Of a DNA stretch of 64,000 nt, positions 1 through 27,316 are shown piece after piece. Both the position numbers and the translations under genes were made by a program. The DNA lies in IMG/VR virus record IMGVR_UViG_3300049460_000312, positions 1 to 64,000 of that record; one strand, given 5' to 3'. The first letter of the stretch is position 1. Each line of letters opens with the position of its first letter. The notes beneath the pieces were generated by a model, which saw nothing but the letters and a program-made list of their open reading frames with translations, had not been told where the DNA came from and did no database searches.

Positions 1-496
1 ATACCAACGACTCCACGCGAACCAGCAGGCGACGCCATACGTCAGGCTGAGACACCCCCTGAGCGACAGAAATGAAGTACGACATCCCGGTCAGTCGATG
101 CTTGTACTCAAACACGTCGGCATTGACACTGGCGATACGGTAGCCCTTCGGTTTGACCGTCAGTTCGCTATAGCCGAGCTTCGCGAAGTCTTCGCTTTTG
201 GGTTCCGAGATAAAGAACACCGGCAGCCAGTACGACTTGGGCGCGTCCAGTGCAGCTTCCTGCAGCGCCTTGGCGACAGTGGAGCGTCGCGTGCCGTTCT
301 TGCCACCACCAAAGAGGTAGAGGAAGTTGCGCCAGTAGCCGTGGGCGTCAGTCGACTGCTTCTTGGCGAAGCGCCGGTTCTTCGTGTCAATCAGCACCAG
401 CCAGCCATTAAGATGGTTGGTGCGCAGGAATTCGCTTGCTGTCTTACCACCGAAGAAGCGCGCCATACGCCGCTCCAGTTCTGTTTCCAGTTTCAT
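1..496 (-). CDS. Hypothetical protein, partial (runs off the left edge); member of the tandem degenerate GIY-YIG-like family
   Basis: Not in the ORF track. Hand translation from ATG at 496 (upstream GGAAAGAG) gives an open frame MKLETELERRMARFF...GWLVLIDTKNRRF...DVFEYKHRLTGMSYFI to the window edge. Confidence 0.8.
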   Translation of the reverse strand, partial: MKLETELERRMARFFGGKTASEFLRTNHLNGWLVLIDTKNRRFAKKQSTDAHGYWRNFLYLFGGGKNGTRRSTVAKALQEAALDAPKSYWLPVFFISEPKSEDFAKLGYSELTVKPKGYRIASVNADVFEYKHRLTGMSYFISVAQGVSQPDVWRRLLVRVESLV

Positions 497-597
497 GTTA
501 CGGTCTCTTTCCTTTGGTTAATCGAAGGCGCGTGGTGAAACGCCATCATAAAGGACCTCCGAGTAGAAACTCTACCCAGAGGTCCAGTGCTCGTGCT

Positions 598-927
598 TTA
601 ACGCTCTTCTTCGAGGATATCGATGTCGCCGTCGTCATCCTCTTCACTCACGTCGGGGAACTCGTCATCCCCCGGCACGTCCGCGCCAGCCAACGCCGGT
701 GCTTCTTCGAAGGTGCTCACGTCGATCGTGACTTCCGACTGGAAAATAGCCGGATTAAGGGTGCGCATCGCTTCGATGACTTCCTCCTCGCGATCCAGGT
801 GCGTCGGATGCGAGTTGTTGGTCACGTCGTCAAACCCGTGCGTGTTAAAGGTAGCCGCAACCAGCCGCGCAGCGAGGTCGCCATCGGCTTGGTCGTCGGC
901 GGTAATGTCAATAGAAAGTCTGCCCAT
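598..927 (-). CDS. Acidic hypothetical protein
   Basis: 109 aa ORF, very D/E-rich C-terminus, RBS-like GAGG upstream, same strand as neighbours. Confidence 0.7.
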   Translation of the reverse strand: MGRLSIDITADDQADGDLAARLVAATFNTHGFDDVTNNSHPTHLDREEEVIEAMRTLNPAIFQSEVTIDVSTFEEAPALAGADVPGDDEFPDVSEEDDDGDIDILEEER

Positions 928-1010
928 GATGCAGGTCCTCTCGAAAGTGGTTGTAAATCGAAGGGTTAGATTCCCGGCTTATATGCGTCGGGTAGAGAGA
1001 GGTGCTTGGT

Positions 1011-1550
1011 TTAAACCGAGCGAGGAAAAGGGAAGGCGAGGCACCAGACCTGAACTGCTGGACTCTGCTCGTCTCCGTCGAACAACTTCTTGACTGCTAG
1101 CAACTGATGCGGTGGCAGGGAAGGTGCCATCACACATGTGTCGTCAACCGGTGTCTTGCAACCGATTCTTGAGACAAACGCGTAGGTAGCAAAGGGCGCG
1201 GCTTCCTCCAGGAGAGCCTTGCCGCCAATCACGAACGTATGGGCCTTCTGACACTTGGCAAGCGCTTCCCCTAGGCTATTGACGACAGTCGCGCCCGGCG
1301 CCTCGTACCCGAGGTTGCTGGTCACCACGATGTTGTGGCGATCCGGTAAAGGCCGAGCTTTTACCGGGAGTGACTCCCAGGTCTTACGACCCATAATCAC
1401 GTCGCAGAACATCGTGGTGCTTTTGAAGTAGGCGAAATCGTGACTAGAACGCCAGGGAATCCCGCCGTCTTTACCTATCACACCGTTCTGATCAGTCGCG
1501 TAGATCAGATACACCAGCGGCTTCTTGACCAGCTCACTCAGCTTGATCAT
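1011..1550 (-). CDS. folA: Dihydrofolate reductase
   Basis: Motifs IYATDQNGVIG..GGIPW, DFAYFK..T, VIMGRKTWESLP..RPLPDRHNIVVT, FVIGG. Confidence 0.97.
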   Translation of the reverse strand: MIKLSELVKKPLVYLIYATDQNGVIGKDGGIPWRSSHDFAYFKSTTMFCDVIMGRKTWESLPVKARPLPDRHNIVVTSNLGYEAPGATVVNSLGEALAKCQKAHTFVIGGKALLEEAAPFATYAFVSRIGCKTPVDDTCVMAPSLPPHQLLAVKKLFDGDEQSPAVQVWCLAFPFPRSV

Positions 1551-2245
1551 ATTCCACCTGTGGGCTGTTGCGGAGGCTCAGTGCGGGCGGACGCCGACGG
1601 ACACACGGGGAAACTGCCGGCGGCACGGTCGGTCACATGATACCCGACGAGTGGCTGGCCGTTCAGGATCAACCCACTGCGCAGGAGTGTCTTCCGCGGA
1701 AAGGCACTATGAAACGCCTGGATGGTGCTGGAAAGTCGCTCCTCCAGTACTGTTTTCATCGCTGCATTGAAGTAGCCTTCACGCAGAGCTTCTTCCACAT
1801 TGCCTAGCGCCTGGCAAAGCTCGATCGCGCGCTGCCGCATGCCAGGCATCCCACCGTTCATATTCGTGAAGTGGAAATCGGCGGTGTTGGAATGCTTCTG
1901 CCCGTAAGTCGCTTTCGGGTACTGATTGCGCCAGTAGCCCGCGGTGCTTTCTTCATAGGCCACAAAGCCATGAAAGCGGGGCTCGGCATCGACGCCGTCA
2001 TGCTCGCCGTTAACCAGATAGTGTCCTTTAATCTCGACCTGATGAAAGACCACTTCTTTGAGCTGCAGATCGGCGCCGGGCTCCAAACCATAGAAGGCGC
2101 TGTGCGAGCGCAACATCCGTTCGGGTGTGGAGTCGCTCGTGTAGCAGAAAGTCACGAGATAGAGTTGCAGGCCGATATGAAAGCGAGCATTCACTTTCTT
2201 CGAGTCGTCGCCTTCGAATTGAGGCAGGGCGGGTTCGTGTGGCAT
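1547..2245 (-). CDS. Hypothetical phage protein
   Basis: 232 aa ORF, ATGA overlap with the DHFR start, AGGAAAGG upstream. Confidence 0.8.
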   Translation of the reverse strand: MPHEPALPQFEGDDSKKVNARFHIGLQLYLVTFCYTSDSTPERMLRSHSAFYGLEPGADLQLKEVVFHQVEIKGHYLVNGEHDGVDAEPRFHGFVAYEESTAGYWRNQYPKATYGQKHSNTADFHFTNMNGGMPGMRQRAIELCQALGNVEEALREGYFNAAMKTVLEERLSSTIQAFHSAFPRKTLLRSGLILNGQPLVGYHVTDRAAGSFPVCPSASARTEPPQQPTGGI

Positions 2246-2281
2246 GGTCGTACTTTTCCTTTCCTTTAAATGGCGAATTGG

Positions 2282-2995
2282 TTAGATATCGCCGGTGGTG
2301 GTTTTACGAACGAATTCCTTGACTGCTTCCAGGTTAAGAAAGGCCACATGGGCCGAGATATTGCGTGCACACACGCCATCGGGTACGGAGCAACGTGCCA
2401 CCCGGGCGGTGTTCTTGTCGAAGATACGGCTGGGGGTAAGCGTTTTGGACCGTAACGCCACGCGCATGGTTTCCCGGTCGGCCTCGTGTTCGGTGCTTTC
2501 GGTGCGCAGCCAGCGACCAAATTGCAGATTCGCTTTGGAAACCAGCTTTTCTTCCGGCGTACTCAGCGGCGCAGCAACATATCGCTCCACCTTGTTAAAA
2601 GGAGAATAAACCCGGAACACGCCGTGCTCTTCTTCCATGGCTTCGCCACGCCGGGTCGCGACGCGGACCTTACCCTGGCTCGCCAGCCAGTTTTCCACCA
2701 GACCACGGGACTGCATGGGCATGACAAAGAACTGGTACTGCGGATGTATGTTCAGCAAGCGCCGCAAGACCAACGCCAGGGCCTTGTAACGCTGGTAGGG
2801 TTTCTCGCGTACCACCAGTTCGTAGAACTCGATGTCGCCACTGGTCGAGGTGTAGTACTGGTTCGTCGCCGGATGGTAAATCAAGATCCCTTCCCAGGCT
2901 TTCGGAATCTCCCGTTCCGGTACACCGTTCACTATCTCCCGCAAGTAGTGACTGATTTGGGACGGGCGAGTGAGTTTCTCATATTCGACAATCAT
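2282..2995 (-). CDS. Hypothetical protein, tandem degenerate GIY-YIG-like family
   Basis: 237 aa; EGILIYHPATNQYY and GVFRVYSPFNKVERYV beta-hairpin-like motifs. Confidence 0.75.
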   Translation of the reverse strand: MIVEYEKLTRPSQISHYLREIVNGVPEREIPKAWEGILIYHPATNQYYTSTSGDIEFYELVVREKPYQRYKALALVLRRLLNIHPQYQFFVMPMQSRGLVENWLASQGKVRVATRRGEAMEEEHGVFRVYSPFNKVERYVAAPLSTPEEKLVSKANLQFGRWLRTESTEHEADRETMRVALRSKTLTPSRIFDKNTARVARCSVPDGVCARNISAHVAFLNLEAVKEFVRKTTTGDI

Positions 2996-3014
2996 GGCGG
3001 TTACTACTATCGTG

Positions 3015-3045
3015 CGGCATAGCCGGAGGGATTACCCCTCCGACC
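3015..3045 (-). terminator. Hairpin with TATGCCG tail
   Basis: Minus strand GGTCGGAGGG-GTAAT-CCCTCCGGCT then ATGCCG, just after the stop of 3058..4398. Confidence 0.65.
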
Positions 3046-3057
3046 ATTTACCGGGTT

Positions 3058-4398
3058 TTAGAACCGGAAGACTTCGTTGTCACTCAGCAGACGTTTCGTT
3101 GACGCCGTGATGACTTTGGAGATCTCCAGACCGAGCGAGTCGTACAGGCCCACCAGCAGCCGGGCAACTCGCATGCGCTGGTTCAGTTCCTTGGCGAGCA
3201 GGTTCTGGAAAGTATGAAGCGCGGTGAAGAACGCTTCAAACGAACCATGGCCGCGCGACAAAGCGATGAACGCATTACGCAGATACTTCGACGGCTGGAT
3301 CAGCCGGGTGTTGATGGTGGTGAGATGCAGGTCCAGTCCTTCGGCTTCGAGCGCTTGCTCGACGACCTTCAGGGTCTTCGACGGCAGGGAAGCCGCTAGC
3401 GCCCGAATCAGCCAGAGCGACAGGTAGTAGTGTTCCGGCCGGATAGTGCGGGCCACGTGCGCGTACTCCACCCGGGTCGGATACTCTCCTTTACGATGCG
3501 GCACCTCCACCAGTCGAGCCAGTGCCATCGCATCAAACTCGCGCACAACCTTATCGTACGCTTGGTTATGCGTTTGCGACTGCTCGCGCGTCACCGTGTA
3601 GTACAGCGCCAGCTCACGCAGCAGATTCTTCGCTTCGTTGGTCAGCCCCACGATGTCGTCAGTGATAATCATGCTGCGGTAGGTGCCGAACTCCGTACCC
3701 ATAATCAGGTTCACGAAGTTAAAGAGCAACTCCTCGCGCGTAACCTGATCGAGGCCGCGTACCGCTGCATCCACACGTCGGAACTCACTTTCCAGCTTGT
3801 CGACATCGAGTGCCCCGTGATAACCCCGAAACTTCTCGAACAACTCCGCCTCACCCACGAAGTTGTAGTGTCCCTCGCGGACCAGGTCGCGATACGGCTT
3901 GTTGGCATCCAGCGGTTTGCCCGGATGGAACAGGCGCGAGAGCTTGGACGGATGCGCTTCCTGTTTGCCGGAGAGGTCGACGTTCTCCGCATCCTGATAC
4001 CGTCCGAGGGCTTGCTTGACGCTATCAGTGACGTTCGGAGCGAAGTCGTCAGCGTCGAGGAGATCTTCCAGCTCCGCATCTTCACCCCGCATCTCAGCCG
4101 CGATCATTTTGGAAAACGCCCCGGCTAGCTTCTGGATGTCATCTTCGCTGGGCGTGTCATCATCTTCCTCGCGGGACGAAACCAGCGTCACTGCTTTGGG
4201 CTGCATCGCGGAGGGATGTTCCTCCTGCCCGCCGTTAGGTTCATCGCCCGCTTTGGGTGGTTGCTTTGCCATGGTTTCCTCCAAGAACGCGGCCACTTCT
4301 TTCGACGTCATTAAAGGCCGTCGATCAGTTTTGACGCGCTTCGATTTCGGTGGTTTCTTAGCCACAGGACTCTCCCTTTCAAGCGGACTGGTTTTCAT
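3058..4398 (-). CDS. Hypothetical helical protein, probable paralogue of 4420..5541
   Basis: 446 aa ORF; low-complexity N-terminus, helical C-terminus alignable by eye with the neighbour. Confidence 0.85.
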   Translation of the reverse strand: MKTSPLERESPVAKKPPKSKRVKTDRRPLMTSKEVAAFLEETMAKQPPKAGDEPNGGQEEHPSAMQPKAVTLVSSREEDDDTPSEDDIQKLAGAFSKMIAAEMRGEDAELEDLLDADDFAPNVTDSVKQALGRYQDAENVDLSGKQEAHPSKLSRLFHPGKPLDANKPYRDLVREGHYNFVGEAELFEKFRGYHGALDVDKLESEFRRVDAAVRGLDQVTREELLFNFVNLIMGTEFGTYRSMIITDDIVGLTNEAKNLLRELALYYTVTREQSQTHNQAYDKVVREFDAMALARLVEVPHRKGEYPTRVEYAHVARTIRPEHYYLSLWLIRALAASLPSKTLKVVEQALEAEGLDLHLTTINTRLIQPSKYLRNAFIALSRGHGSFEAFFTALHTFQNLLAKELNQRMRVARLLVGLYDSLGLEISKVITASTKRLLSDNEVFRF

Positions 4399-4419
4399 CA
4401 GTCCGTGCTACCTTGCTGC

Positions 4420-5541
4420 TTACCAGGGCGCATCCTGATCGTGGATACGTTCCTTGGATTCTTCGACCAGATGCTCGTACGTCATGCCGATACGGTTCAG
4501 GTACTGGAAGTACGCACCTAGATCGCTGACTTCAGCCATCAGCCAGGCACGCAGATCGTTGGACATCTCGACGATCGCTTCAAGCAGATCCGACAGGCGT
4601 TTGTCTTCGCGGATATAGCCCGCACTGACATCGCGCAGCTTGGCTGAGCTGCCGACCATCTTCGTCATCGCCTGGGTGCTTTGCTGCGGCCAGCGCGTCT
4701 TCGGAATGTAGTCGTACTGCACATTAGTCGGAATAGCGCTATTGAAGAAGTTGCGCAGTTGCTTGATGCGCTTGATGAGCTTCGCATCATCTTCGGGCGA
4801 CTGCCAGGCGAAATGCACCGGCACATCACCGGTCTTTGCCGGCAACAGCGGTGCGAGCAATTCTTCCTTGGTCGCGCCTTGCGTCCAGGGCTTGTAGAAC
4901 TGGAAGCGCTCGCGGATCATCGGCACAAACGAGACGATCGAATCGATGGCTTCGACTTCATCTTCGCTCAGCACTTCTGCCGCGACACTCTTTTGCATCG
5001 GAAAGCGCAGACCCGGACGATGTGTGGTGTAGTCAGTCATCCCGAACTGCTGGGCCGGTATCAACACGGTGTTGATGATGCGCTCGCGCGCGTCTTCGTC
5101 GAGGATCTCGTAGTCATCGTAAATCTTTTCGAGCTTACGGACCTTCTTGATCACGTCCTGCAGGCGCGTGCCCAGTGCCCAGCGTTCGACGATGGGTCCC
5201 AGACGGATCATCGTCATGCGATCGATCGCGGCGTCGAGGGCCATGTGGTTGAAGAACTGGAAATTCTTCAGCGTCACAGCACTGCTCTCGCCGTCCACCC
5301 CGTACGGTGACAGCTTCATCGCGTTGGTGAAGGTGTTGTAGCCTTCCTGGTCCTTGAAGCACTGGCGGGCCAGTTCGTTGGACTTGTCCATCAGCACTTT
5401 GGAATACGGAGCTTCGTACTCCGGATTCGTTTTGTACGGCTCGAACGCCGGAAGCACCGGCGCCTGACCGTCCGTAGCGACGGCGATCACAGTCGTCTTG
5501 GATTCATCTGCGGGCTTATCGTTTTTCGATTGTTTCGTCAT
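4420..5541 (-). CDS. Hypothetical helical protein, probable paralogue of 3058..4398
   Basis: ORF 4420..5577; likely start MTKQSK at 5541. Confidence 0.85.
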   Translation of the reverse strand: MTKQSKNDKPADESKTTVIAVATDGQAPVLPAFEPYKTNPEYEAPYSKVLMDKSNELARQCFKDQEGYNTFTNAMKLSPYGVDGESSAVTLKNFQFFNHMALDAAIDRMTMIRLGPIVERWALGTRLQDVIKKVRKLEKIYDDYEILDEDARERIINTVLIPAQQFGMTDYTTHRPGLRFPMQKSVAAEVLSEDEVEAIDSIVSFVPMIRERFQFYKPWTQGATKEELLAPLLPAKTGDVPVHFAWQSPEDDAKLIKRIKQLRNFFNSAIPTNVQYDYIPKTRWPQQSTQAMTKMVGSSAKLRDVSAGYIREDKRLSDLLEAIVEMSNDLRAWLMAEVSDLGAYFQYLNRIGMTYEHLVEESKERIHDQDAPW

Positions 5542-5613: not shown

Positions 5614-6330
5614 TCAGGCTCTAGCAAGCAGGTTCTCTCGGTACTCCATGGAAAAACGGTGGTTGTCCAGTCCCGCGGCAGCCACCACTATTTTGCGTTT
5701 ACCGGCCTCGCCTGCCGTCGTGGATAGAATACAGAACTCAGTGAGCCTGTTATCCATCCACTGACGACTGGCTTCCGCGATCTGATTACAGCCGACGTAG
5801 TACGTCGTCAGATCGATAGAGTGACGGTTTAGCGCTGCATCCAGGGCATTGCGCCACTTATGCAGGAAATCGGCGATCAAGTTCTCGGGGGATTGTGGTC
5901 GAGCACTGGTGATCGTAAAGCCTCGCGCATACTTCGGATACGTCACCTGGTAGCCCCAGGTATCGGCTTCCGGATCGAGCCGGGAGCGGCGCGTGTTCAA
6001 ACTCTTGTAACGCCTGAGTAAGCTTTCCAGCTTTTCAGCCAATCCAGGGTACAAGCCGTCCGGACGAAAGTACACTGTCCAGTCGTCGATCTGGGAAGCT
6101 TCCAGCGCCGCTTTCAGATCCATAGCCCGATCAACGTAATAGCCTAACACCGCCTTACGGGCGGTTTCCAGGCAACGGTGAGCGTTGACGGTATGAAGCT
6201 GATAGCTCAAGCGATTGCGGGTTTGCACCAGCAGCAGATAACCCACCCGACTCCGGTGCAGGAAGTGCGCGGGATCGAGGCTAGGAATCTGCTGGAAACC
6301 CAGATCGATCAGTTGTTTTTTGAGTGACAT
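5614..6330 (-). CDS. Hypothetical protein, tandem degenerate GIY-YIG-like family
   Basis: 238 aa; VGYLLLVQTRNRLSY...LKAALEASQIDDWTVYF and WGYQVTYPKYARGFTI. Confidence 0.75.
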   Translation of the reverse strand: MSLKKQLIDLGFQQIPSLDPAHFLHRSRVGYLLLVQTRNRLSYQLHTVNAHRCLETARKAVLGYYVDRAMDLKAALEASQIDDWTVYFRPDGLYPGLAEKLESLLRRYKSLNTRRSRLDPEADTWGYQVTYPKYARGFTITSARPQSPENLIADFLHKWRNALDAALNRHSIDLTTYYVGCNQIAEASRQWMDNRLTEFCILSTTAGEAGKRKIVVAAAGLDNHRFSMEYRENLLARA

Positions 6331-6977: not shown

Positions 6978-7210
6978 CAGAAGAAGCCGCAATTCTGAGT
7001 TTTGTCGAGCAATGACACAGCATCTTCGACGAGAAGCTCGGGATGCAGCTGATATGCAATCACCAAATGACGAATGTGGCGTTCAGTAGTCTCTTCGTCC
7101 CAGTGAGGTGCTGATGGAAAGCGCGCCATCACTATCCGTTTGGCCAGTTTCTCGAACTCTTCGTACGGAAACTGAACTGGTCTGAACGGCACCGACTTAG
7201 GGGAGCTCAT
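6977..7210 (-). CDS. Small hypothetical protein
   Basis: Within ORF 6977..7312; likely start at 7210, overlapping the TAXI gene stop. Confidence 0.55.
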   Translation of the reverse strand: MSSPKSVPFRPVQFPYEEFEKLAKRIVMARFPSAPHWDEETTERHIRHLVIAYQLHPELLVEDAVSLLDKTQNCGFF

Positions 7211-8126
7211 ACCAAGCCCAGCCGCCGTGGTTCGAAGCGTCGACTTCTTGCCACTTCGGATGCGTGCCCGTCTTGTCCTGGATATTGCCGAGCTTCGCGT
7301 CGAAACATGCACGCATGTTCTTCAGCTTGCCGATCATTTCCTGCGAACGGTAGACACGCGTCACGAGCAACGCTTGCGTCGCTACCGACTGCACCCCCGA
7401 GGCGTTCAGATTCTGATACGAGAGCTTCGCGGGGAAGTACAGCTTCGAGGCCGACAGCTTGGTCACGAGGTCTTGCGGAATCGGCAGAATCTTGAATGCA
7501 GGCGGGAGCGCCTTGACCAGACCATGCGGGGCACCGCCAACGACGAGGATCGCATCGAGGTCACCCGAGAGCAGTTTCGTCTTGAGCGTTTCATTGTCCG
7601 CCACCGGCAGCACTTTGAAACCGAGTCCCGAGTTCGCTGCCACGACATTGGCCGAAGCAATCGAGCCACCCACGGCGCCGACGTTACGACCCTTCAGATC
7701 AGCGAGCGTATTGAACGTTACCGCAGTGCCACCGACATTGAAACCGGCCACCGAGAGGCCGCCTTCCTTCTTGACGTCAGCGCGGGCAATGAAGTGCAGT
7801 TCTTCCGGATGGAGCGCGATCAGCGTCTTGATATTGGCGACCTTCGAGGCGTCGACACGGCGTTCGAATTCGAGCATGTCCGATTGCACGATCGCAGCAT
7901 TCACCTGATTGCCGATCAGCAGCGTCTTGTTGTCGATGCCGCCCTTCGTTTCGCGTTCGACCCAGTCGCCGTTGCCGCACATCTGGTTGAGTTCGCCGAA
8001 CATCACGCTGTACGTCGAGCCGCCTTTCTTGTCACCCGTGGCGACGATGATCTTCTCCTGCGCGACGGCATTCAAGCAGATTGCCACAGCGATCATCGCC
8101 AGGATGGATTTGAACAGATTTTTCAC
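7197..8126 (-). CDS. TAXI-family (TRAP) solute-binding protein with signal peptide
   Basis: Signal peptide MKNLFKSILAMIAVAICLNAVA; IVATG..GGSTY, ETKGGIDN..LL, AAIVQSD, ALHPEELHFIAR, TLADLKGRNVG are typical TAXI motifs. Confidence 0.88.
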   Translation of the reverse strand: MKNLFKSILAMIAVAICLNAVAQEKIIVATGDKKGGSTYSVMFGELNQMCGNGDWVERETKGGIDNKTLLIGNQVNAAIVQSDMLEFERRVDASKVANIKTLIALHPEELHFIARADVKKEGGLSVAGFNVGGTAVTFNTLADLKGRNVGAVGGSIASANVVAANSGLGFKVLPVADNETLKTKLLSGDLDAILVVGGAPHGLVKALPPAFKILPIPQDLVTKLSASKLYFPAKLSYQNLNASGVQSVATQALLVTRVYRSQEMIGKLKNMRACFDAKLGNIQDKTGTHPKWQEVDASNHGGWAWYELP

Positions 8127-13799: not shown

Positions 13800-13895
13800 T
13801 TTTAGCCTTCCTTACAGTCTGTAAGCGATTTTGGAGAGTTCACCCATCGTATGGAGCCCTCGCTCCACTAACTTTTTTCTTAAGTGAGTAAAGCA

Positions 13896-15380
13896 ATGTC
13901 GGACGCAACGACCAACACCGTAAATCAAGAAGTTGACCCTGCCGCTGAAGTAGCAATTGCAGCTGAAACGGTCGACACGAGCGTCCCCGCAACTCCGGAA
14001 GCAGCTCCTGCTGAGCAAGCCGCCGTCGTCGTGGATGAAGAACAACCTGGCCAACCTACCGATGCTACCGTCGCTGAATCGACGGACGCACAGGTCGTCG
14101 AAGCCCAACCCGCTGCGGATACGCCTGCTGTCGAAGCAGAAGCCCCTGCTGTGGAAGCACAACCCGAAGAAGCTGCACCGGTCGCTGTCGAAGCTGACCC
14201 GGTCGCCGAACAGCCTGCGGCCGATCCGGCGCAAGCCGAAGCACCTGTGGTGGCTGACGAAGCTCCGGCAGAACAAGCTGAGCAACCGGCTGCTACGAAT
14301 GAAGCTGCTCCGGCAGTCATCGAGCAACCCGCTGTGGAAACCCCGGCCGAAGTTCCGGCTGAGCAACCGGCAGAAGTGGCACCGGTTGAAGTGGAAGCAC
14401 CGGCAGTCGAAACCCCGGTTGACGCAGCGCCTGCTGAAGAGCAAGCTGCTGTCGAAGCCCCGGTCGAGACCGCAGTGGCGGAAACTCCCGCAGAACAGCC
14501 GGCCGAACAGGCTCCGGTTGCCGAGGCACCTGCTGTGGACGCGCCGGGCGCTGACACGCCCGTCGACGCTCCGGCAGCTGAAGCTCCTGCGCAGGAAGCT
14601 GCTGCTGATGCGCCTGCAGTCGACGCTCCGGTGGAAGCACCGGCAGCAGACCCGGTCGCTGAAGTTTCGGTCGAAGCACCTGCGGAGACTGCTGATGAAC
14701 CCGTTGCTGAACAACCTGCCGCTCAAGACCCTGTGGTCGACGAGCAACCTGCTGCTGCTGAAGTTCCGGCGGCATCCGACACTGCTGAAGCTGCTCCTGC
14801 AGCTGAAGAAGCTCCCGCTGTGGCGGATGATGCAGGCAGCCAAGATTCGGCGCCCGTAGTAGAAACCCCGGTGGAAAGCGCACCGGCCCAAGAAGAGGCA
14901 CAACAAGATGCAGCCCCTGTCTCGGGAGACGCTCCTGCAGCTTCGGATAACGGCGCTGATGCACCGGTCGTGGCGGAAGAACCCGCGCCCGTTGCAGCTG
15001 ACCCGGCTCCCGCAGCTGACGTACCTGCAGCGACGGATACCCCGGCAGATGCTGGCGAAACGCAACCCGCACCGGGAAGCGACGCTGGCGATGCAGAGGC
15101 TCCGGCTCCGGTAGTGGATCAACCCGCTGCTGACGCTCCCACAGAAACGCCTGTGGAAACGCCGGTCGACACGCCCGTGGACACTCCGGTGGAAGTGGCT
15201 CCGGTGGAACCCGTCGTGGTTGTGGTGAAGGAAGAAATTTCCCACCGCTTCCTCGAAGAGATCCGCCACGAGCTGACGGCATTCGAACACGAGATGATGG
15301 CTCGCGTCTTCGGCATCCTCTCGCGTATCAAGCCGCATCATCGTGAGAAGCTGTTCGAGCACTTCAAGAAGCATCGCTAA
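13896..15380 (+). CDS. Acidic Ala/Pro/Glu-rich low-complexity protein with a short His-rich helical C-terminus
   Basis: About 450 aa of degenerate AEQPA/VEAPA/ETPV repeats; followed by a terminator. Confidence 0.85.
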   Translation: MSDATTNTVNQEVDPAAEVAIAAETVDTSVPATPEAAPAEQAAVVVDEEQPGQPTDATVAESTDAQVVEAQPAADTPAVEAEAPAVEAQPEEAAPVAVEADPVAEQPAADPAQAEAPVVADEAPAEQAEQPAATNEAAPAVIEQPAVETPAEVPAEQPAEVAPVEVEAPAVETPVDAAPAEEQAAVEAPVETAVAETPAEQPAEQAPVAEAPAVDAPGADTPVDAPAAEAPAQEAAADAPAVDAPVEAPAADPVAEVSVEAPAETADEPVAEQPAAQDPVVDEQPAAAEVPAASDTAEAAPAAEEAPAVADDAGSQDSAPVVETPVESAPAQEEAQQDAAPVSGDAPAASDNGADAPVVAEEPAPVAADPAPAADVPAATDTPADAGETQPAPGSDAGDAEAPAPVVDQPAADAPTETPVETPVDTPVDTPVEVAPVEPVVVVVKEEISHRFLEEIRHELTAFEHEMMARVFGILSRIKPHHREKLFEHFKKHR

Positions 15381-15408
15381 GCTGCGAAAAAAGAAGTAAG
15401 CGGTAAGT

Positions 15409-15446
15409 AAGCCTCCTGGGCGCGAGCCCGGGAGGCTTTTATGCCG
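15409..15446 (+). terminator. Terminator with TTTTATGCCG tail
   Basis: AAGCCTCCTGGGC-GCGA-GCCCGGGAGGCTTTTATGCCG. Confidence 0.9.
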
Positions 15447-15547
15447 CTTTACAACAGCACGTACATCACAAAGCCGAATAACGGTACGATCCACCAGACA
15501 TACCAGTACACTGATCGTTTACCTTTCTCAGCACTCATGATAGCTCC

Positions 15548-19867: not shown

Positions 19868-21685
19868 TTAAGCCGCCTGCTTCAGGCGTTCGCAGACTTC
19901 GGCGTACGTGGTCGGGCGCGGAAATGCGCCATTCACGTACATCGCGCGCAGCTCACCCGAGGACGTGATAATGTCCTGGATCGCCATTTGCTGTTCTTCC
20001 AGCTTGACGAAGTCGCCGCGCTCGTTCTTCACGACCTTCAGGAAACCCTTGGCGGACTTCTTGTTAGTGACGCCTTCGGTCTTCGGTGCCTTGAAGAGTT
20101 CGATCACTTCGTCTTCCACCCGCACGGCGGTGGCCTTCACGGCAAAGCCGAAGGTGTCGCGCGTGTTGTGCTGGTACGTGTAGGAGCCGATACCGAACAC
20201 CGTGTTGCAGGAGGCGAAACCCTTGACGTAGAGACGTCGGAGGATTTCATCCGCACGCTCGACCGTGATCGAGTCACCGTAAATCAGACCGACCCGTTCG
20301 TGCAGGACCTTGTAGCCGAGCGACGTCTTGGTGCCGCCGAAGATATCCCACAGCACTTGCACCGCACCTTGTTCTTGCGGCGTGAGCGGCCACTCGGGCA
20401 GCGGGACGATGCAGTAGCCATTGTAGTTCGCCGTGTACCACTTGCCTTGCAGACGCTCGTCGTCTTTGAGAATGGCGCGAACGATTTCGCCACCACCGAA
20501 GTTGACGAGGAAGTCCTTCGGCGCATCGCGCATTTCGTCGGTACTCGACGTGATGCGCAGGAAGTCGTCCTTGCTGTGGACGTAACGACCCGCGAGCACT
20601 TCAACAGGGTCGCCCGAGTCCGGACGGAACACCACCTTGGCCAAGCCCATCTCGTCCGGCTGGCGGGCGAGGATTTCGTTCTTCAGGCTGGCTGCGATCT
20701 CGGTGATCACCTTCCAGAAGTCGAAAGAGTCCGACACCAGCGAGACCACACCGGTCGGATGCTTCTTGGTCAGTACGTCGAAGATGAACTTACGCTCGCC
20801 TTGGGCGCGCAGCTCGTCCATATCGAGGCCGATCTTGTCGTTCGGATAGTGCGCGTGGATCTGCTTGAGCAGCTTGCTGACGTTGAACAGAATGTTCGAC
20901 GTCGCCACGGCGTGTTCGGTAGCGACCACCGAGCAGGCGACGAATTCCTTTTCGACGTTGGCCCCGTACATGTCTTCGACGTAGTCGATGGCCGGCAGCG
21001 TATCGGTGCCCTTGAAGACGATCTGATGACTCGAACCCACCCGTGCCGCATCTTCCGGACCGGAGAGTCCACGGAAGGAGAAGTCATGGCCCTGGATGTC
21101 GACAAACGAGCGATCCACGCCGGTTTTATCGGCCCAGTATTCGAACGTACGGCGATACTCGTAGGCGATGGTCGCGTTGGTGGTCATCTTCCACAGCAGC
21201 GCCGACATCATCGTTTCGAGGTAGTTCACCAGCCAGTAGAACGCCGGATGCGTGTTGTACGTGACGTAGGTCGGCACGTTGATATTCACCCGCTCACCTT
21301 CGGGAAGCCCCAGCACCACGAGCGGCAGGTAGCCGAGGTCGTGCAGTTCCTCGAAGCACTTCACATCCACCCGGTTATCGCCGAGGTAGTATTTCATACG
21401 GCGCGCATAGCGCTTACAGACGGCTTCCTTGGGCTTGCTGAAGAACGAGTTGTGCCAGAGGCCGTTGATCTCGCGCATCACGCCCTGCAGGCCGTAGTTG
21501 ACGATCTTGCCGTCCCAGAAGCGCGACTTTGACTTGTTGTCGACGAACAGACGGTCCGAGCGGTACGTGCCGTTGCTGTAGGTGAAGTTCGTGCCGTCCG
21601 GGTAGAGCGGGCGATGGCCGACTTTGTAGCCGTCGGTAGTGGTGGGGGCGAACAGATGAAACGAAGTATCGTGAGTTTGGTGCAT
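19868..21685 (-). CDS. nadV: Nicotinamide phosphoribosyltransferase-like protein (probable NARP1 Namat)
   Basis: TDGYKVGH..LYP, HDFSFRG, ATEHAV, SLVSDSFD, VFRPDSGDP, GLIYGDSIT, FGIGS, TRDTFGFAVKAT, KKSAKG. Confidence 0.95.
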   Translation of the reverse strand: MHQTHDTSFHLFAPTTTDGYKVGHRPLYPDGTNFTYSNGTYRSDRLFVDNKSKSRFWDGKIVNYGLQGVMREINGLWHNSFFSKPKEAVCKRYARRMKYYLGDNRVDVKCFEELHDLGYLPLVVLGLPEGERVNINVPTYVTYNTHPAFYWLVNYLETMMSALLWKMTTNATIAYEYRRTFEYWADKTGVDRSFVDIQGHDFSFRGLSGPEDAARVGSSHQIVFKGTDTLPAIDYVEDMYGANVEKEFVACSVVATEHAVATSNILFNVSKLLKQIHAHYPNDKIGLDMDELRAQGERKFIFDVLTKKHPTGVVSLVSDSFDFWKVITEIAASLKNEILARQPDEMGLAKVVFRPDSGDPVEVLAGRYVHSKDDFLRITSSTDEMRDAPKDFLVNFGGGEIVRAILKDDERLQGKWYTANYNGYCIVPLPEWPLTPQEQGAVQVLWDIFGGTKTSLGYKVLHERVGLIYGDSITVERADEILRRLYVKGFASCNTVFGIGSYTYQHNTRDTFGFAVKATAVRVEDEVIELFKAPKTEGVTNKKSAKGFLKVVKNERGDFVKLEEQQMAIQDIITSSGELRAMYVNGAFPRPTTYAEVCERLKQAA

Positions 21686-21714
21686 GATGGTGTTTGTGTT
21701 CTTGCTGTTATAGG

Positions 21715-22614
21715 TTAAAGCGGAAACCAGTGGACGCGCCGGAGTTGTTCGTGGTTACGAAACTTCTCGCTATGCAGACGCAATTCACTCGTGCAATCCG
21801 GATGGAACGAATCGGTGGTGTAGATACGATCGAATACGTCGAGTACCGGCTCAAGACCGTAGGAGAAAATCCCGTGCGAGACGAACAGGCTCAGTTCCTT
21901 GCAACCTTCATCACGTAGGATCTTGCCAAGCTGAATGAATGTACGACCACCGTCGCAGATGTCGTCGACGACGATCAGGTTCTTGCCCGTGACATCCCCG
22001 TCCAGACGCGCAGCCGAGACTTCCATCGTCTTCGGGTCCCGTGCCTTGGTGGCTGTGACGTATGGAATGTCGAGTGCTTCCGACAGCGCCTTGATCTTCT
22101 TGACTGCACCAGCGTCCGGTGCGACCAGCATCAGATCACGCGTGTCGAGGCTCAGGATCTGATGTTCGACTACCTGACCGAGCATCTGCTTTTGCGTCGT
22201 GACGAACGATTTGTTGATCACGGCGGCAGCCACGTCGCTATGCGGATCGAACAGCGACACCGATTCCAGCTGCATGGCGTTGAGCATTTGCGCGAACATG
22301 CTCAGCGACAAAGCTTCGCCGACATTGCAAACGCGGTCCTGACGGGCGTACGGCAGATACGGAATGAACACGTGGATCTTCGCGACCGGTGCGATACGGC
22401 GCAGCGCGTCGATGGTCAGGAAAAACGCCATCACCAGATCCGAATTCGTCAGGTGTCCCGTGATCTCAACGCGCTCGCCACGAAACGTCAACGAGAACAG
22501 ATTCTTCACCACGGCTTCCGGCAGACGGACATTCACTTCACCGCCCTTGAAGGTACTGACTTCCACCGGCAGGTTCTGCATGAACACGCCGTTACCAACA
22601 CTAACCTTAATCAT
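21715..22614 (-). CDS. prs: Ribose-phosphate pyrophosphokinase-like protein (probable NARP1 Adps)
   Basis: FKGGEVNV, PYLPYARQDR, DPHS, VAPDAGA, VVDDICDGGRTF, SHGIFS. Confidence 0.95.
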   Translation of the reverse strand: MIKVSVGNGVFMQNLPVEVSTFKGGEVNVRLPEAVVKNLFSLTFRGERVEITGHLTNSDLVMAFFLTIDALRRIAPVAKIHVFIPYLPYARQDRVCNVGEALSLSMFAQMLNAMQLESVSLFDPHSDVAAAVINKSFVTTQKQMLGQVVEHQILSLDTRDLMLVAPDAGAVKKIKALSEALDIPYVTATKARDPKTMEVSAARLDGDVTGKNLIVVDDICDGGRTFIQLGKILRDEGCKELSLFVSHGIFSYGLEPVLDVFDRIYTTDSFHPDCTSELRLHSEKFRNHEQLRRVHWFPL

Positions 22615-22696
22615 GTTTTTACCCGAATGAAAATCAGGCCTGCTATATGTAAAAAGGAAGGAGGGCTGCGGGGAACAGACACCTCCTCCACGAAAC

Positions 22697-23560
22697 TTAG
22701 GCGTCGCCGGGTGACGACTGGTCGAACGCGATCCACGGCTGGTCGTGGCTCTCGCGCGGCTGCCACGTAATCAGCGCAAGATCATCAGCACCTTCCGGCT
22801 TCGGGAGGGACTGATTGCCGTAGAAGATACCGTGCGAGACGATCGGTTGCTCACGACGCGGGGTATCGACGTAATGATGCACGTATTTTTTCGTCGAGAG
22901 ATGCGACTGCGGATCGGGATGAACGTGCTTGGTGAGGTGGAGATTATCTTCACCCGGCTCGGTCACATACACGTCGACATTCAGCAACGGCGAAATGTTC
23001 AGACATGTGAACGACTGCAGCGCCTGAAACAGCTTGAAGCGATTGACACGATAGGTGTAACTCGGCGTCGAAAGAATCACCCGTACGTGTTCAGGGTCAT
23101 TGGTGCTACCCCGTACGTAGAACTCTTTGACAAGCAGATTCGGACTGTCGTTCTCGCTGGGCTTGATCTTCACTGCCGTGACCAGCTCGCCCATGAAGTA
23201 CACCACGTTATCTTCTCGGTCGGCCCAGTTAAAGCCCGACAGGAACAACATGAGACAGTAGGCGTGCTTGCTGTCGATCACGAGATCCTGGCCTTCGCAT
23301 TGCAGCACGAAGTTAGCCTGGGTCTTGCTCGTGAAGCCATCCTTGTCGACCGGTAACCACTTCGGCACGTCGTAGCGGTCGTACTCGGCGTGCGCCTCGG
23401 CGTCGCTTTCCAGCTTCACGATCCGGAAATGCTCATCCGGTGTCAGGACGTTACCGTCCTTGTCCTTGTATTCCGAGAGACCCATGCTGATGGTCACCGA
23501 ACTATTGCGATCCATGCGCCGACGGGATTCTTCCTTTGCCAAACGTTCTGCTTTAGACAC
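22697..23560 (-). CDS. Hypothetical protein
   Basis: ORF 22697..23803; likely GTG start at 23560 with GGAG RBS. Confidence 0.8.
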   Translation of the reverse strand: MSKAERLAKEESRRRMDRNSSVTISMGLSEYKDKDGNVLTPDEHFRIVKLESDAEAHAEYDRYDVPKWLPVDKDGFTSKTQANFVLQCEGQDLVIDSKHAYCLMLFLSGFNWADREDNVVYFMGELVTAVKIKPSENDSPNLLVKEFYVRGSTNDPEHVRVILSTPSYTYRVNRFKLFQALQSFTCLNISPLLNVDVYVTEPGEDNLHLTKHVHPDPQSHLSTKKYVHHYVDTPRREQPIVSHGIFYGNQSLPKPEGADDLALITWQPRESHDQPWIAFDQSSPGDA

Positions 23561-23879
23561 AACCTGCTCCTTCAAGAGTTTCCCCGCTGAAGCGCCACTC
23601 CACGTGTTTCGCATCCATACGGTTTTTGAAATAGAACACCGGCGAGAGCACGTCGTCGAACTTGCGCGGCATGCCATGCAGATACGACCACGAGAACGTG
23701 GTGATACCTTTTGCACGCAGATGCTGGAGTAGCTCATCGATCCACAGATCCAGTGGACGGGTCTCGCTGGTGATGGGCGGGAAAACGACGGTGTACCAGC
23801 CATACGGGGTCGGCCGATCGAAGACGGGCTCTTCTTTCTTGCTGGTATTTACCGGCGTAAGTTTTTTCTGTTTCTCCAC
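23553..23879 (-). CDS. Hypothetical protein
   Basis: 108 aa ORF between thyA and the next gene. Confidence 0.7.
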   Translation of the reverse strand: MEKQKKLTPVNTSKKEEPVFDRPTPYGWYTVVFPPITSETRPLDLWIDELLQHLRAKGITTFSWSYLHGMPRKFDDVLSPVFYFKNRMDAKHVEWRFSGETLEGAGCV

Positions 23880-23886
23880 GACGACC

Positions 23887-24771
23887 TCAGACGGCGAAGG
23901 GATACTGGATGGGCGGGTGAAACGCCGTGTACTTCACTTCGAAGTCATTCACCGTGACCCACGACTCGACATCGGCCAGCGTCTTGATATCCGGGTTGAT
24001 ATCGATGGTCGGTTCAGCCAGGATCGGGCGATCCAGCTGTTCCTGGACCAGGTCCAGCTGGTTGCCGTAAATATGGCAGTTGACATTGCGGTGATGAGCG
24101 TACTTCGGGTTCTTGCCCGTGATCTGCGCCATCAGACGCAGCAGCAGCCACACCTGCACCATGTTCGCAACGGTCCCGAGCGGCCAGTCCGACGAACGCT
24201 GGGTCGAGTTCAGGTACAGGTCGTTACCCAGCAACGAGAACTGGTGTTCGTACATGCACGGACGCAGACATCCCAAGTAGAACATACCTGGGTTCCAGAA
24301 CGTGATAATTTCACCCCGATCGTCTTTGCCGGCCTTCAGGTTGTTGTAGACCTTGTGGAAGAGATCGATGGAATTGTCCGGATTCACATCGTCACGCACC
24401 GGCCAGTTCTTGGCGACTGCGCCGTAGATCAGACCGAGGTCATCCTCACCCTTGCGGTACGGACTGTTCAGCCACGCTTGGTTCTCGTTGGCATTGGCAT
24501 CCCACGACTTGGTGCCGAGGGCGCGCATCTGGGCGGCCGACGTCACGCCCTTGAGATACCCCAGCATCTCGGCGATCGGCAGCTTCACCGGTGCCTTGCG
24601 CGTGGTCACGATCGGGGCCTTGTTCGTCGTGGCATCATAGGTCATGTCGATATTGATCACCGTCCGACAGGCGATACCGGTACGCTCATTCGGGAGATCC
24701 ACCCCGTTGTCGTAAATGTGCTGCAAACCTGCGAGGTACTGCATTTCGGCGCGATCGATAGCGTGGGACAT
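23887..24771 (-). CDS. thyA: Thymidylate synthase
   Basis: ERTG, PIVTTRK, DLGLIYG, LRPCM (catalytic Cys), QRSSD..LG..AN, HIYGNQ. Confidence 0.97.
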   Translation of the reverse strand: MSHAIDRAEMQYLAGLQHIYDNGVDLPNERTGIACRTVINIDMTYDATTNKAPIVTTRKAPVKLPIAEMLGYLKGVTSAAQMRALGTKSWDANANENQAWLNSPYRKGEDDLGLIYGAVAKNWPVRDDVNPDNSIDLFHKVYNNLKAGKDDRGEIITFWNPGMFYLGCLRPCMYEHQFSLLGNDLYLNSTQRSSDWPLGTVANMVQVWLLLRLMAQITGKNPKYAHHRNVNCHIYGNQLDLVQEQLDRPILAEPTIDINPDIKTLADVESWVTVNDFEVKYTAFHPPIQYPFAV

Positions 24772-24862
24772 GGCTGTGATGACAAAAAAATAAAAGGTTG
24801 GAATTCGGGAGAAGCAGCGCGAAGCTGCTCCTCTCCACATACAACCTTCAGGCCGGTATTTT

Positions 24863-25288
24863 TTAGTGAGCCAAAATCCAGATCACCAGCGGTGCGATCA
24901 CCAGCACCACAAACAGGGCCGCCATCCCGCCTCTGATAAAGAGTTTGTCGTGCTGTTCTTCCCGACGTTTTCTTTCTTGCGCGATGTCTTGCTTGATCTG
25001 CAGCTCGATCTCTTCGCGCGAGGCGCGCGGATTGATGCGGCTCTTCGGGTCGTTGAGCTGGTTGTAAAGCTTTTGTCCCAACGCTTGCACTTCAGGACAT
25101 GGCTGTGTCGGCGCCTTGCCGAAGTCGGGCTGGCCTTCTTTCTTGCTGAAGATGCCATCCAGCGCGTGGCACAATTCTTCCTGCTTTTCCGGTGACATAG
25201 TCTTGGGCACGCCATCCGGAGTGAAACAGTAATACCCACCTTCACATCCAAGAGAGGAACACCCGCCAGGCTTGCATGTTGCTTTCAC
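24863..25288 (-). CDS. Membrane-anchored hypothetical protein
   Basis: N-terminal Cys cluster, C-terminal TM helix. Confidence 0.7.
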   Translation of the reverse strand: MKATCKPGGCSSLGCEGGYYCFTPDGVPKTMSPEKQEELCHALDGIFSKKEGQPDFGKAPTQPCPEVQALGQKLYNQLNDPKSRINPRASREEIELQIKQDIAQERKRREEQHDKLFIRGGMAALFVVLVIAPLVIWILAH

Positions 25289-25291
25289 TTC

Positions 25292-25771
25292 TTAGTTCTC
25301 CAAGTTATCCATCATGAACCGCACTTTGGGCAGCTTGTTGTCGTGGTCAAGGAACGCCAACCAGACCTGCCCGTCTTTGTAGCCAACCCAGATGTCGGCG
25401 ATATGCTGCATGACTGATGCACCGGCATCCTGGAATTCAGGTCGATCGCCGACGTAGCAGTGCATCTCGTGCTTGGCCTTGAACTCTTCATGATTCGGTG
25501 TCGGCGAATGACAGATAGCCTGCGCGATCAGCTGGAAGAGAGCACGTACACCCGAGTAGTCGAGTTCGAAGTCAGCGTTAGATAACTCGAAACCTGAAAG
25601 CTCTTCGGTAGTGGTGACGTTAAACGTCAGGATGCCGGTGTTGTGAACCGGCTTGGTAGTCAGCTTCGAGACCTTGCCGTCGACGATCACTTTCAACGGT
25701 GTCTTGAACATGTCGTTCTGTTTGAACAGTTCGAGCACACCTGCATCAGCCATGACTTGTGGAATACGCAT
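25292..25771 (-). CDS. Hypothetical protein
   Basis: 159 aa ORF, AAGGAG RBS. Confidence 0.8.
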   Translation of the reverse strand: MRIPQVMADAGVLELFKQNDMFKTPLKVIVDGKVSKLTTKPVHNTGILTFNVTTTEELSGFELSNADFELDYSGVRALFQLIAQAICHSPTPNHEEFKAKHEMHCYVGDRPEFQDAGASVMQHIADIWVGYKDGQVWLAFLDHDNKLPKVRFMMDNLEN

Positions 25772-25783
25772 GTCTCTCTCTCC

Positions 25784-26149
25784 TTAACGAGTCCGTTCCC
25801 AACGACTTTGTTCCCACCAACGACGGTCTCGCTTGTAACGCGAGCCACCACCTGTATCCGGTTCTTCCGTGGCATCCTGCGCCGGCATCGCTTCGTACGA
25901 GAACTCGATTTCGTTATCGACCAGCTTGGTGCCTTCCGGGAACTTTGCAAACACGCTCCCGTCTTCGTTCTGGAACACCCGGCCGATCACGAAACCTCGC
26001 ACGCCATCACGCTCGATCTTGCCAAACGCTTCCATGTCATAGCGCTCACGCGGCCAACCCTGTCCGATCGGGGCTGCAGTTTCCGGAGGCGGATTCTCAG
26101 CGGCGGCCTGTCGGGCGAGTTTCTCGCGGTGGCTTTTCTTACTGCTCAT
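25784..26149 (-). CDS. Hypothetical protein
   Basis: 121 aa ORF, GGAG RBS. Confidence 0.75.
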   Translation of the reverse strand: MSSKKSHREKLARQAAAENPPPETAAPIGQGWPRERYDMEAFGKIERDGVRGFVIGRVFQNEDGSVFAKFPEGTKLVDNEIEFSYEAMPAQDATEEPDTGGGSRYKRDRRWWEQSRWERTR

Positions 26150-26161
26150 TATTGTTCTCCG

Positions 26162-26482
26162 TTACTGGATATTGAGGAGGGTGCAAACTTTGTGGATGAG
26201 TTCGAAGAAGACGTTCTGGAAACCATGCCACGACGTAGTGGGGCGCGTGTACACATCGAGGTGGCCGACCAGGATGGCCTGACCCAACACAAAACCGACC
26301 ACGGCCATGGCGATGATGGTCAGTATCCAGTCAATCACTTTGTTCCAACGCTTCATCTTGCGATGCCGCAGGATCGTTCTGGCTTGCGCACGACGCAGCG
26401 AGTCGCGGCGCACGATGGTGCTCAGCGGGTAATCGAGGAGATTGAATTCGGTAATCGATTGCTTTTGCGAAGTGCGGAGCAT
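26162..26482 (-). CDS. Single-pass membrane protein
   Basis: Basic stretch then VIDWILTIIAMAVVGFVLGQAILV. Confidence 0.75.
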   Translation of the reverse strand: MLRTSQKQSITEFNLLDYPLSTIVRRDSLRRAQARTILRHRKMKRWNKVIDWILTIIAMAVVGFVLGQAILVGHLDVYTRPTTSWHGFQNVFFELIHKVCTLLNIQ

Positions 26483-26504
26483 GGTGACCTCATTGAAGTG
26501 ATGA

Positions 26505-26546
26505 CGGCATAAAAGACAGGCTACGGGTAAATCCGTAACCTGTCTC
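26505..26546 (-). terminator. Terminator with TTTTATGCCG tail
   Basis: Minus strand GAGACAGGTTACGGATTTACCCGTAGCCTGTCTTTTATGCCG. Confidence 0.85.
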
Positions 26547-26554
26547 GGGTTTGT

Positions 26555-27316
26555 TTACTGGGCGATACCCAGGTACTCCTCCATACTCGCGTGCGGCAAG
26601 CGAAGCATCGAGTTGCGGTAGTAGAGTGCATCAACTGACGAGATGCGGCTCAACACCACTTCGCCTGCTTCGAGATGCTGCTTCGAGAGACGCGTAATGT
26701 ACAACATGGCCTTGTGCTCGGATTCAAACTCTTGGGCCAAATCCGTGATATCCCAATGGCTGATGTCCGTCAACCCATGGTGCTTCACGAAATAATACAT
26801 TGCCCGGTTTGCATTCGGGATGGTTTTGAGCACGTAGTTGTTGAACGTCAGCATACGCTGACTGATGCGGGCCAGGATTGCCAATTCGGGAACCGTAGAG
26901 ATTTCCTCGAAGTAGAAGACAGCGCCGGTTTCCCGATGACACAGCTTCCACACGGTAAAGCGAATCTTCTCTTCACCGGGCAATACGCGATACGCCCCAC
27001 CGCGATTAGGACTCGGACGCTTATAAAGGACACCGCGTTCCGAGAGATGGCTGAGCACGGCACGTGAGGACAGGTACAGCGCATCCTTCGTGTCTTTGGT
27101 GATCTCGGCCATAAAGAGGAGCACTTCAGAAGGATTCGTTTTGAGCAATTCCTTCAGAAGGTTCGGGTAGTTGTTCTTACTCCGTTGTGCTCGACAATTG
27201 CGCATCGCACGCACAAAGCTTTTCCCCGTCGCTTGGTGCGTGTAAATGTAGATGCCTGGGCCACTATAGAGCACTTGGCCCGTAACCGCACGAAACTTGA
27301 AACCCGCGATTTGCAT
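26555..27316 (-). CDS. Tandem degenerate GIY-YIG-like protein
   Basis: PGIYIYTHQATGKSFV and TVWKLCHRETGAVFYF. Confidence 0.75.
   Translation of the reverse strand: MQIAGFKFRAVTGQVLYSGPGIYIYTHQATGKSFVRAMRNCRAQRSKNNYPNLLKELLKTNPSEVLLFMAEITKDTKDALYLSSRAVLSHLSERGVLYKRPSPNRGGAYRVLPGEEKIRFTVWKLCHRETGAVFYFEEISTVPELAILARISQRMLTFNNYVLKTIPNANRAMYYFVKHHGLTDISHWDITDLAQEFESEHKAMLYITRLSKQHLEAGEVVLSRISSVDALYYRNSMLRLPHASMEEYLGIAQ

Follow-up and report, generated by a model that had tools for sequence, protein, structure and literature searches.

The closest described systems to the proteins considered here are GIY-YIG nucleases. I-TevI and the T4 Seg proteins match the Pfam GIY-YIG domain and carry the GIY tyrosine, the YIG glycine and R27, and the free-standing GIY-YIG homing endonucleases, whose genes are sporadic, add a C-terminal linker and a NUMOD or helix-turn-helix element. 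R.Eco29kI and Hpy188I are homodimers of catalytic subunits, and T4 endonuclease II (EndoII, or DenA; PDB 2wsh) is a single-domain catalytic protein that acts as a tetramer (PMC2764454). Here we analyzed a stretch of 64,000 nucleotides, called the window below, that makes up the first 64 kb of the 283,373-bp IMG/VR virus record IMGVR_UViG_3300049460_000312, and we describe four minus-strand genes whose products (members 1 to 4) we read as very divergent members of one family of basic, tandem GIY-YIG-fold proteins of about 240 residues that are likely to bind nucleic acid. We put the probability of this reading at roughly 0.6.

Member 1 (P0001, 2-496, minus strand) has 165 codons in the window and runs off its edge, and once the two ends of the record are joined into a circle it becomes a complete protein of 243 amino acids that ends at genome position 283011. 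Member 2 (P0002, 2282-2995, minus strand) has 237 amino acids, member 3 (P0003, 5614-6330, minus strand) 238 and member 4 (P0004, 26555-27316, minus strand) 253, all translated with genetic code table 11. An original prediction, made from the letters of the window, had placed four open reading frames (ORFs) at these positions, as we find them, and the hairpin motifs that it quoted are all present in the sequence, albeit listed in an order that differs from that of the ORFs. The N-terminal and second hairpins are GWLVLIDTKNRRF and VFEYKHRLTGMSYFI in member 1, GILIYHPATNQYY and VFRVYSPFNKVERYV in member 2, GYLLLVQTRNRLSY and GYQVTYPKYARGFTI in member 3, and GIYIYTHQATGKSFV and VWKLCHRETGAVFYF in member 4. 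The genes had been called dispersed, which fits member 4, 20 kb away, better than members 1 to 3, which lie within 6.3 kb; the family had also been called expanded, and the expansion is modest, with four copies here as compared to two in the phages RP12 and RP31.

The four are real genes under purifying selection. We take them as real because syntenic orthologues exist for every one of them, be it in related phages or on long metagenomic contigs, and the ratio of nonsynonymous to synonymous substitution rates against the Ralstonia jumbo phage FLC1-1B is 0.28, 0.085, 0.126 and 0.125 for members 1 to 4 in order. Among named phages, FLC1-1B and FLC4-3B come nearest to the record, with 78% nucleotide identity across 57% of its first 8 kb, and RP12 and RP31 of the genus Ripduovirus come next; RP12 has been described as a phiKZ-related phage (PMC5468394, PMC11530567).

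The fold assignment comes from predicted structures. The AlphaFold model of member 4, built from alignment A2 (42 of 55 homologues), has a mean predicted local distance difference test score (pLDDT) of 91.6 and consists of two domains with a low-confidence linker at about residues 100-118, and that of member 3, built from alignment A5 (16 sequences), has a pLDDT of 88.3 and likewise two domains. Each domain in both models runs beta-beta-alpha-alpha-beta-alpha, and the models show the three-stranded antiparallel sheet and the order beta1-beta2-helix-helix-beta3-helix of the GIY-YIG fold. In the N domain of member 4 (residues 1-100; 27017-27316, minus strand) the hairpin is followed by a helix at 52-60, a strand at 65-71 and a helix at 77-94, while in its C domain (residues 119-253; 26558-26962, minus strand) the second hairpin is followed by helices at 144-163 and 171-180, a strand at 188-197 and a helix at 200-216. 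The N domain of member 3 (residues 1-114; 5989-6330, minus strand) has strands at 30-36, 41-47 and 84-89 and helices at 50-61, 70-77 and 97-104, and its C domain (residues 121-238; 5617-5970, minus strand) has the same element order with long helices. The layout proposed in the original prediction is thus recovered in both folded members: the motif forms a beta hairpin, then come helices and a strand, the N domain supplies the "L..LL helix and aromatic strand" as its second helix and its third strand, and in the C domain the first helix is capped by the (S/P)xE motif.

When the two models were compared with 48,161 PDB chains, the top 4-6 matches of both were all GIY-YIG nucleases aligned over whole domains, and these matches cover both domains of member 4 and the N domain of member 3. 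Foldseek against the PDB returned I-TevI and a Grx domain at a probability of 0.96-0.97, with weak E-values; a search of BFVD matched dozens of viral GIY-YIG endonucleases; and in the ESM Atlas eight of the 10 nearest cluster rows were GIY-YIG by Pfam or by name, the ninth being a plant Grx S16 cluster. A look-up by sequence in the same atlas gave a model of pLDDT 0.40 for member 3 and no model for member 2. It could be argued that such a resemblance is an artefact, in which a low-information hydrophobic hairpin picked by eye is combined with over-confident models of a common alpha/beta arrangement. We consider this highly improbable, given that two independent models lead to one superfamily over whole domains, that three further libraries agree with the PDB result, and that the hairpin spacing is the I-TevI spacing in both domains.

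The two models also share their best matches. In BFVD both have the same three best non-orthologous partners, namely A0A4D6BGS7, A0A1L7N102 and gp350 of phage PhiPA3 (F8SJI4), all near full length (180-242 columns, E 6e-8 to 1.4e-4). For gp350 and A0A4D6BGS7 the Foldseek E-values are 6e-8 and 3e-7 with member 4, and 8e-5 and 1.4e-5 with member 3, over 180-230 columns. A0A1L7N102 is RP12 ORF187 (BAW19161), which is orthologous to member 2 (38% identical along 98% of its length). The public BFVD model of ORF187 aligns with that of member 4 over 236 columns (E 1.4e-4) and with that of member 3 over 242 columns (E 2.5e-5). Because this orthologue matches both models along its full length, member 2 is predicted to have the same two-domain shape. 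A two-module GIY-YIG-fold scaffold is therefore predicted directly for members 3 and 4 and, as the same full-length shape, for member 2. The common two-domain architecture claimed in the original prediction accordingly stands for three of the genes by structure and for the fourth through profile comparison, and its suggested test by AlphaFold and Foldseek came out in its favor, in that the two folded members resemble the GIY-YIG fold and point to the same relatives.

The relationship among the four was sought by profile comparison. When the four member families were compared by hhalign with all others among 47 neighbourhood gene families, the best partner of each was another of the four. When N and C domains were compared separately, the highest-scoring pairs joined domains of the same kind and together linked all four members: C with C for members 1 and 4 (44.5%), and N with N for members 2 and 4 (39%), 1 and 3 (26%) and 2 and 3 (16%). 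Whole-protein comparisons are colinear, over 171 columns for A5 and A4 and over 123 columns (33% probability, E 4.5e-4) for A6 (member 1) and A5 (member 3). Members 1 and 3 also stand out in shuffled Smith-Waterman comparisons, with a z-score of 3.4 for a 22-residue match between their N hairpins. Member 1 is placed by profile comparison, at 26-45% probability, and probably belongs to the family.

Based on these results we infer that all four descend from a shared ancestor that already had two domains. Alternatively, the four might have been acquired, or fused from GIY-YIG-fold modules, independently of one another and have converged in length and layout, a scenario with some appeal in that identity between members is at noise level, that hhalign at times pairs an N with a C domain (for instance, N of member 2 with C of member 3), and that the members differ in phyletic distribution. 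We nevertheless hold it to be improbable, as the best cross-family matches are N-N and C-C and colinear over both domains, Foldseek matches between families are near full length, three of the four genes are clustered in 6.3 kb and all four products have 237-253 residues.

The distribution of the members is uneven. Every relative examined (FLC1-1B, FLC4-3B, RP12, RP31 and metagenomic contigs) has members 2 and 4 in single copy and in synteny, and member 4 is the best conserved and most widespread of the four, with 55 homologues at 40-89% identity, several of them from contigs 127-283 kb long. RP12 and RP31 have neither member 1 nor member 3. Orthologues of member 1 are limited to FLC1-1B, FLC4-3B and a single metagenomic contig of 181 kb, and its profile stays at four sequences because further scans gave none: for members 1, 2 and 3, scans of IMG/VR and JGI metagenomes for further relatives returned only RP12 or nothing. 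Member 3 has six relatives by word search, to which an exhaustive profile search added nine more divergent representatives. The only RP12 proteins that surfaced among the BFVD matches to both models were ORF187 and ORF220, the latter being the orthologue of member 4, which suggests, as far as predicted structures can tell, that hidden family members are few; the count of four in this genome is a lower bound, since sequence methods cannot see the family. The family is that of a phiKZ-related clade comprising RP12, FLC1-1B and metagenomic relatives, with remote structural relatives in PhiPA3.

Several details of these genes in the relatives deserve mention. The slot of member 1 (the region of window 496-600) is occupied in RP12 and in one metagenomic relative by unrelated proteins of 296 and 318 amino acids, and the slot of member 3 (5614-6330) is empty in RP12; both slots are gene-replacement hot spots. 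RP12 and RP31 annotate the orthologue of member 4 as a protein of 222 amino acids, and phrog_34626 begins at residue 38. Residues 1-37 of member 4 (27206-27316) form the first strand of the N-domain hairpin, are conserved in 42 homologues and are covered by tblastn in RP12, and the start of RP12 ORF220 has probably been called too far downstream.

The hallmarks of the GIY-YIG domain are degenerate, as had been predicted. Pfam GIY-YIG found no match at E up to 1 in the four members, at E up to 10 in 42 member 4 homologues, or in about 70 family members overall; a six-frame scan of the whole genome was also empty, with positive controls in T4 (eight domains) and PhiPA3 (one). Pfam likewise revealed no NUMOD, IENR1 or other DNA-binding tail in the four, nor any further domain. 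In the superfamily the catalytic arginine lies in helix 1, a metal-binding glutamate in helix 3 and an asparagine past helix 3, and the reference positions used in I-TevI were Y6, Y17, R27, E75 and N90. All hairpins that could be put in register keep two aromatic positions 11 residues apart, as in I-TevI. At the first of these, that of the GIY tyrosine, the family alignments have Y/F/L in the N domain of member 4, W in its C domain and L/F/Y in the N domain of member 3, so the tyrosine is not conserved and the position varies even within the tightly conserved member 4 family. The second aromatic is F34, F/Y134 and, in member 3, an invariant Y43. The YIG glycine is replaced in all eight hairpins, by R, F or L in the family alignments, and ten residues past the YIG aromatic, at the spacing of I-TevI R27, stand Q44, E144 and C53. 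A conserved glutamate in the middle of the third helix was absent in every module examined. In the 16 diverse sequences of the member 3 family the invariant residues are mostly hydrophobic or aromatic with no invariant glutamate, a pattern that looks like that of a scaffold rather than an enzyme. The canonical catalytic residues do not appear to be conserved as a set, which argues against a canonical active site and leaves inactivity unproven; from the non-conservation at these positions, loss of nuclease activity may be presumed.

A number of points weigh against our reading. By ordinary standards the four proteins are unrelated, since pairwise and hidden Markov model (HMM) searches leave them unlinked: a plain MAFFT alignment and BLASTP gave no usable similarity, Smith-Waterman z-scores were below 1 in five of the six pairs, when the family HMMs were run with hmmsearch over the 1,674 ORFs of the genome each recovered its own gene only, and the PHROGs database has members 1 and 3 in no family and members 2 and 4 in two different ones of unknown function (phrog_30389 and phrog_34626, respectively). 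The hhalign self-comparison for internal repeats gave nothing, and profile searches against PDB sequences gave noise only. The profile alignment that the original prediction had called for does connect all four through the best pairs, at probabilities that are all below 50% and E-values of 2e-4 to 5e-3 that are marginal after correction for multiple comparisons. The folded proteins were members 3 and 4, members 1 and 2 being placed via an orthologue or profiles, and for the C domain of member 3 no GIY-YIG match was convincing, so its assignment is weak; the claim of GIY-YIG-like domains is thus borne out for both domains of member 4 and the N domain of member 3. As for the catalytic positions, hhalign against a canonical T4/PhiPA3/RP12 GIY-YIG alignment reached at most 1.5% and offered no alignment on which to map them, and the mapping was done by spacing, hairpin register and secondary structure. 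Conserved polar residues lie near the expected sites in the N domain of member 4 (Y25, H27, N40, Q44, R/K45 and an acidic residue, D/E, at 78), in its C domain (H127, R154, N170, R171, E200, R234 and N235) and in the member 2 family (H41, R63, R97 and E101), and those other than N40, Q44, R234, N235 and H41 might substitute for the canonical catalytic ones. Of these, R/K45, D/E78, R154, E200 and, in member 2, R63, R97 and E101 stand within one to a few residues of the spacing-equivalent positions. Finally, all four products are basic, with an isoelectric point (pI) of 9.4-9.8 and a net charge of +7 to +14, but this is a weak sign of nucleic-acid binding because the neighbourhood is already basic (median pI 8.6, with 28% of genes at pI 9.3 or above).

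The main rival explanation is that the proteins are active nucleases with a remodelled site, either degrading host DNA as T4 EndoII does or serving as free-standing homing endonucleases with at least one of the two modules still cutting. The invariant polar and charged residues that members 2 and 4 keep near the expected active-site elements would fit such a role, and the absence of members 1 and 3 from RP12 and RP31 has the patchiness typical of homing endonuclease genes. T4 seg genes sit among nucleotide-metabolism genes, and so do the genes described here. We nonetheless think an active nuclease unlikely, with perhaps one chance in four, in view of the missing Pfam signal across some 70 members and the want of profile similarity to canonical domains, the variable GIY tyrosine of the member 4 family, the largely hydrophobic and aromatic invariants of member 3, and the lack of a recognizable DNA-binding tail. 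Members 2 and 4, being syntenic, single-copy and conserved, are moreover unlike mobile endonuclease genes.

Under the preferred reading, that of nucleic-acid-binding proteins, which we hold with moderate confidence, each chain would be a single-chain "pseudo-dimer" of two GIY-YIG-fold modules. The modules would keep the nuclease scaffold, that is, a hairpin with the I-TevI aromatic spacing followed by helix, helix, strand and helix, while having lost the sequence signature, and the two together would take the role of the two subunits in dimeric GIY-YIG enzymes such as R.Eco29kI. Such proteins would most likely bind nucleic acid rather than act as canonical one-metal GIY-YIG nucleases.

How this architecture may have arisen is suggested by a second PhiPA3 protein, the 397-residue "putative endonuclease" F8SJV7 (L011 889-2079, corresponding to 66549-67739 of the PhiPA3 record), which Foldseek aligns with the model of member 4 over 254 columns (E 4e-5). 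F8SJV7 has a Pfam GIY-YIG domain at 205-283 followed by a weak I-TevI-type DNA-binding tail, and because both are present it is probably an active enzyme. Its first 200 residues contain two hairpins of the H-x-A-T-G type seen here (GVLTISHVATGSFYMV and GVFKLEHSATGKLIIG), and judging from its sequence, residues ~10-35 and 100-128 appear to be degenerate GIY-YIG-like hairpin modules that precede the canonical domain; an hhalign check of this repeat assignment gave at most 3%. The canonical hairpin of F8SJV7, GVYRITFPATGHFYIG, and the first hairpin of member 4, GIYIYTHQATGKSFVR, are in the same register with 6 of 16 residues identical, and member 4 has an arginine where the canonical hairpin has its YIG glycine. 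This suggests that tandem degenerate modules arose on the N-terminal side of an active domain in phiKZ-related endonucleases and persist here without that domain. A domesticated homing-endonuclease origin is plausible, and we tentatively speculate further, at odds that fall short of even, that these proteins are a family of non-cutting DNA or RNA binders derived from the scaffold of a homing endonuclease and shared by phiKZ-related jumbo phages, RP12-like viruses as well as PhiPA3 and 201phi2-1; its members would act in regulation, shield the DNA of the phage or divert host nucleases as decoys, and F8SJV7 would be a surviving intermediate. The anti-defence role that the original prediction also proposed is speculative, with nothing in these results pointing toward it or away from it.

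The four genes lie among genes for nucleotide metabolism and nicotinamide adenine dinucleotide salvage, in a record of 54-61% G+C in which almost every gene of the first 30 kb is on the minus strand. These neighbours include a dihydrofolate reductase (1011-1550), a nicotinate phosphoribosyltransferase (19868-21685), a ribose-phosphate pyrophosphokinase (21715-22614), a thymidylate synthase (23887-24840) and an AAA_28 kinase-like protein (27484-28239), at whose position RP12 annotates a thymidylate kinase. The relatives add an RNA ligase, and RP12 also an RtcB-like protein. At 7197-8126 (minus strand) there is an NMT1-like product of the periplasmic-binding-protein type (PF16868, E 2.6e-7), and in RP12 (L006 12902-14427) two extra genes beside its orthologue have translations that by eye resemble a membrane permease and a secreted solute-binding protein; NMT1-like or transporter-type content of this kind is unusual in a phage. 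Two ORFs, 13812-15494 (minus strand, 560 amino acids) and 13884-15380 (plus strand, 498 amino acids), overlap almost totally and neither has a Pfam match; FLC1-1B (gp215) and RP12 (ORF203) annotate the plus-strand one, which is the sole plus-strand gene in a long minus-strand block. Window positions 1-127 are an exact repeat of genome positions 283247-283373, and this 127-bp "direct terminal repeat" looks more like the point at which a circular assembly closes than like a physical terminus.

In phiKZ-related jumbo phages most genes are annotated as "hypothetical", and so are these ones in the RP12 and FLC1-1B papers. No degenerate or tandem GIY-YIG protein of a jumbo phage came up in the literature searched, and the tandem degenerate architecture is a real and previously undescribed form of a known fold. 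A fold and an architecture can now be given to the four genes, to PHROG families 30389 and 34626, and to gp350 of PhiPA3 and gp421 of 201phi2-1. Should the modules be inactive, they would clearly exemplify how the nuclease scaffold of a mobile element can be put to use for binding, and if they cut they would hold a GIY-YIG active site unlike the canonical one. The family is invisible to sequence profiles, which highlights the need for structure-based annotation.

The closest whole-protein relatives beyond the orthologues are the uncharacterised proteins PhiPA3 gp350 and A0A4D6BGS7. At 315 amino acids, gp350 differs from the proteins described here by an extra acidic N-terminal stretch of ~120 residues; hhalign aligns it with the member 4 family over 140 columns (33%, E 4.5e-4), with the NxP..L..L and CRHRRTG motifs in common. 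The PhiPA3 record notes that gp350 is "similar to gp421 in Pseudomonas phage 201phi2-1", and no mention of gp350 was found in the literature searched. As compared to I-TevI and the T4 Seg proteins, the four members match no Pfam GIY-YIG model, do not conserve the GIY tyrosine, lack the YIG glycine and have no arginine at the R27 spacing, and where free-standing homing endonucleases continue into a linker and a DNA-binding element, a second GIY-YIG-like module is found here. Whereas homing endonuclease genes are sporadic, members 2 and 4 are syntenic and core-like. T4 EndoII is built of single-domain subunits, while each protein here joins two modules in tandem and is without the canonical residues; and unlike the identical catalytic subunits of R.Eco29kI and Hpy188I, the two modules share a single polypeptide, are dissimilar and show no catalytic signature.

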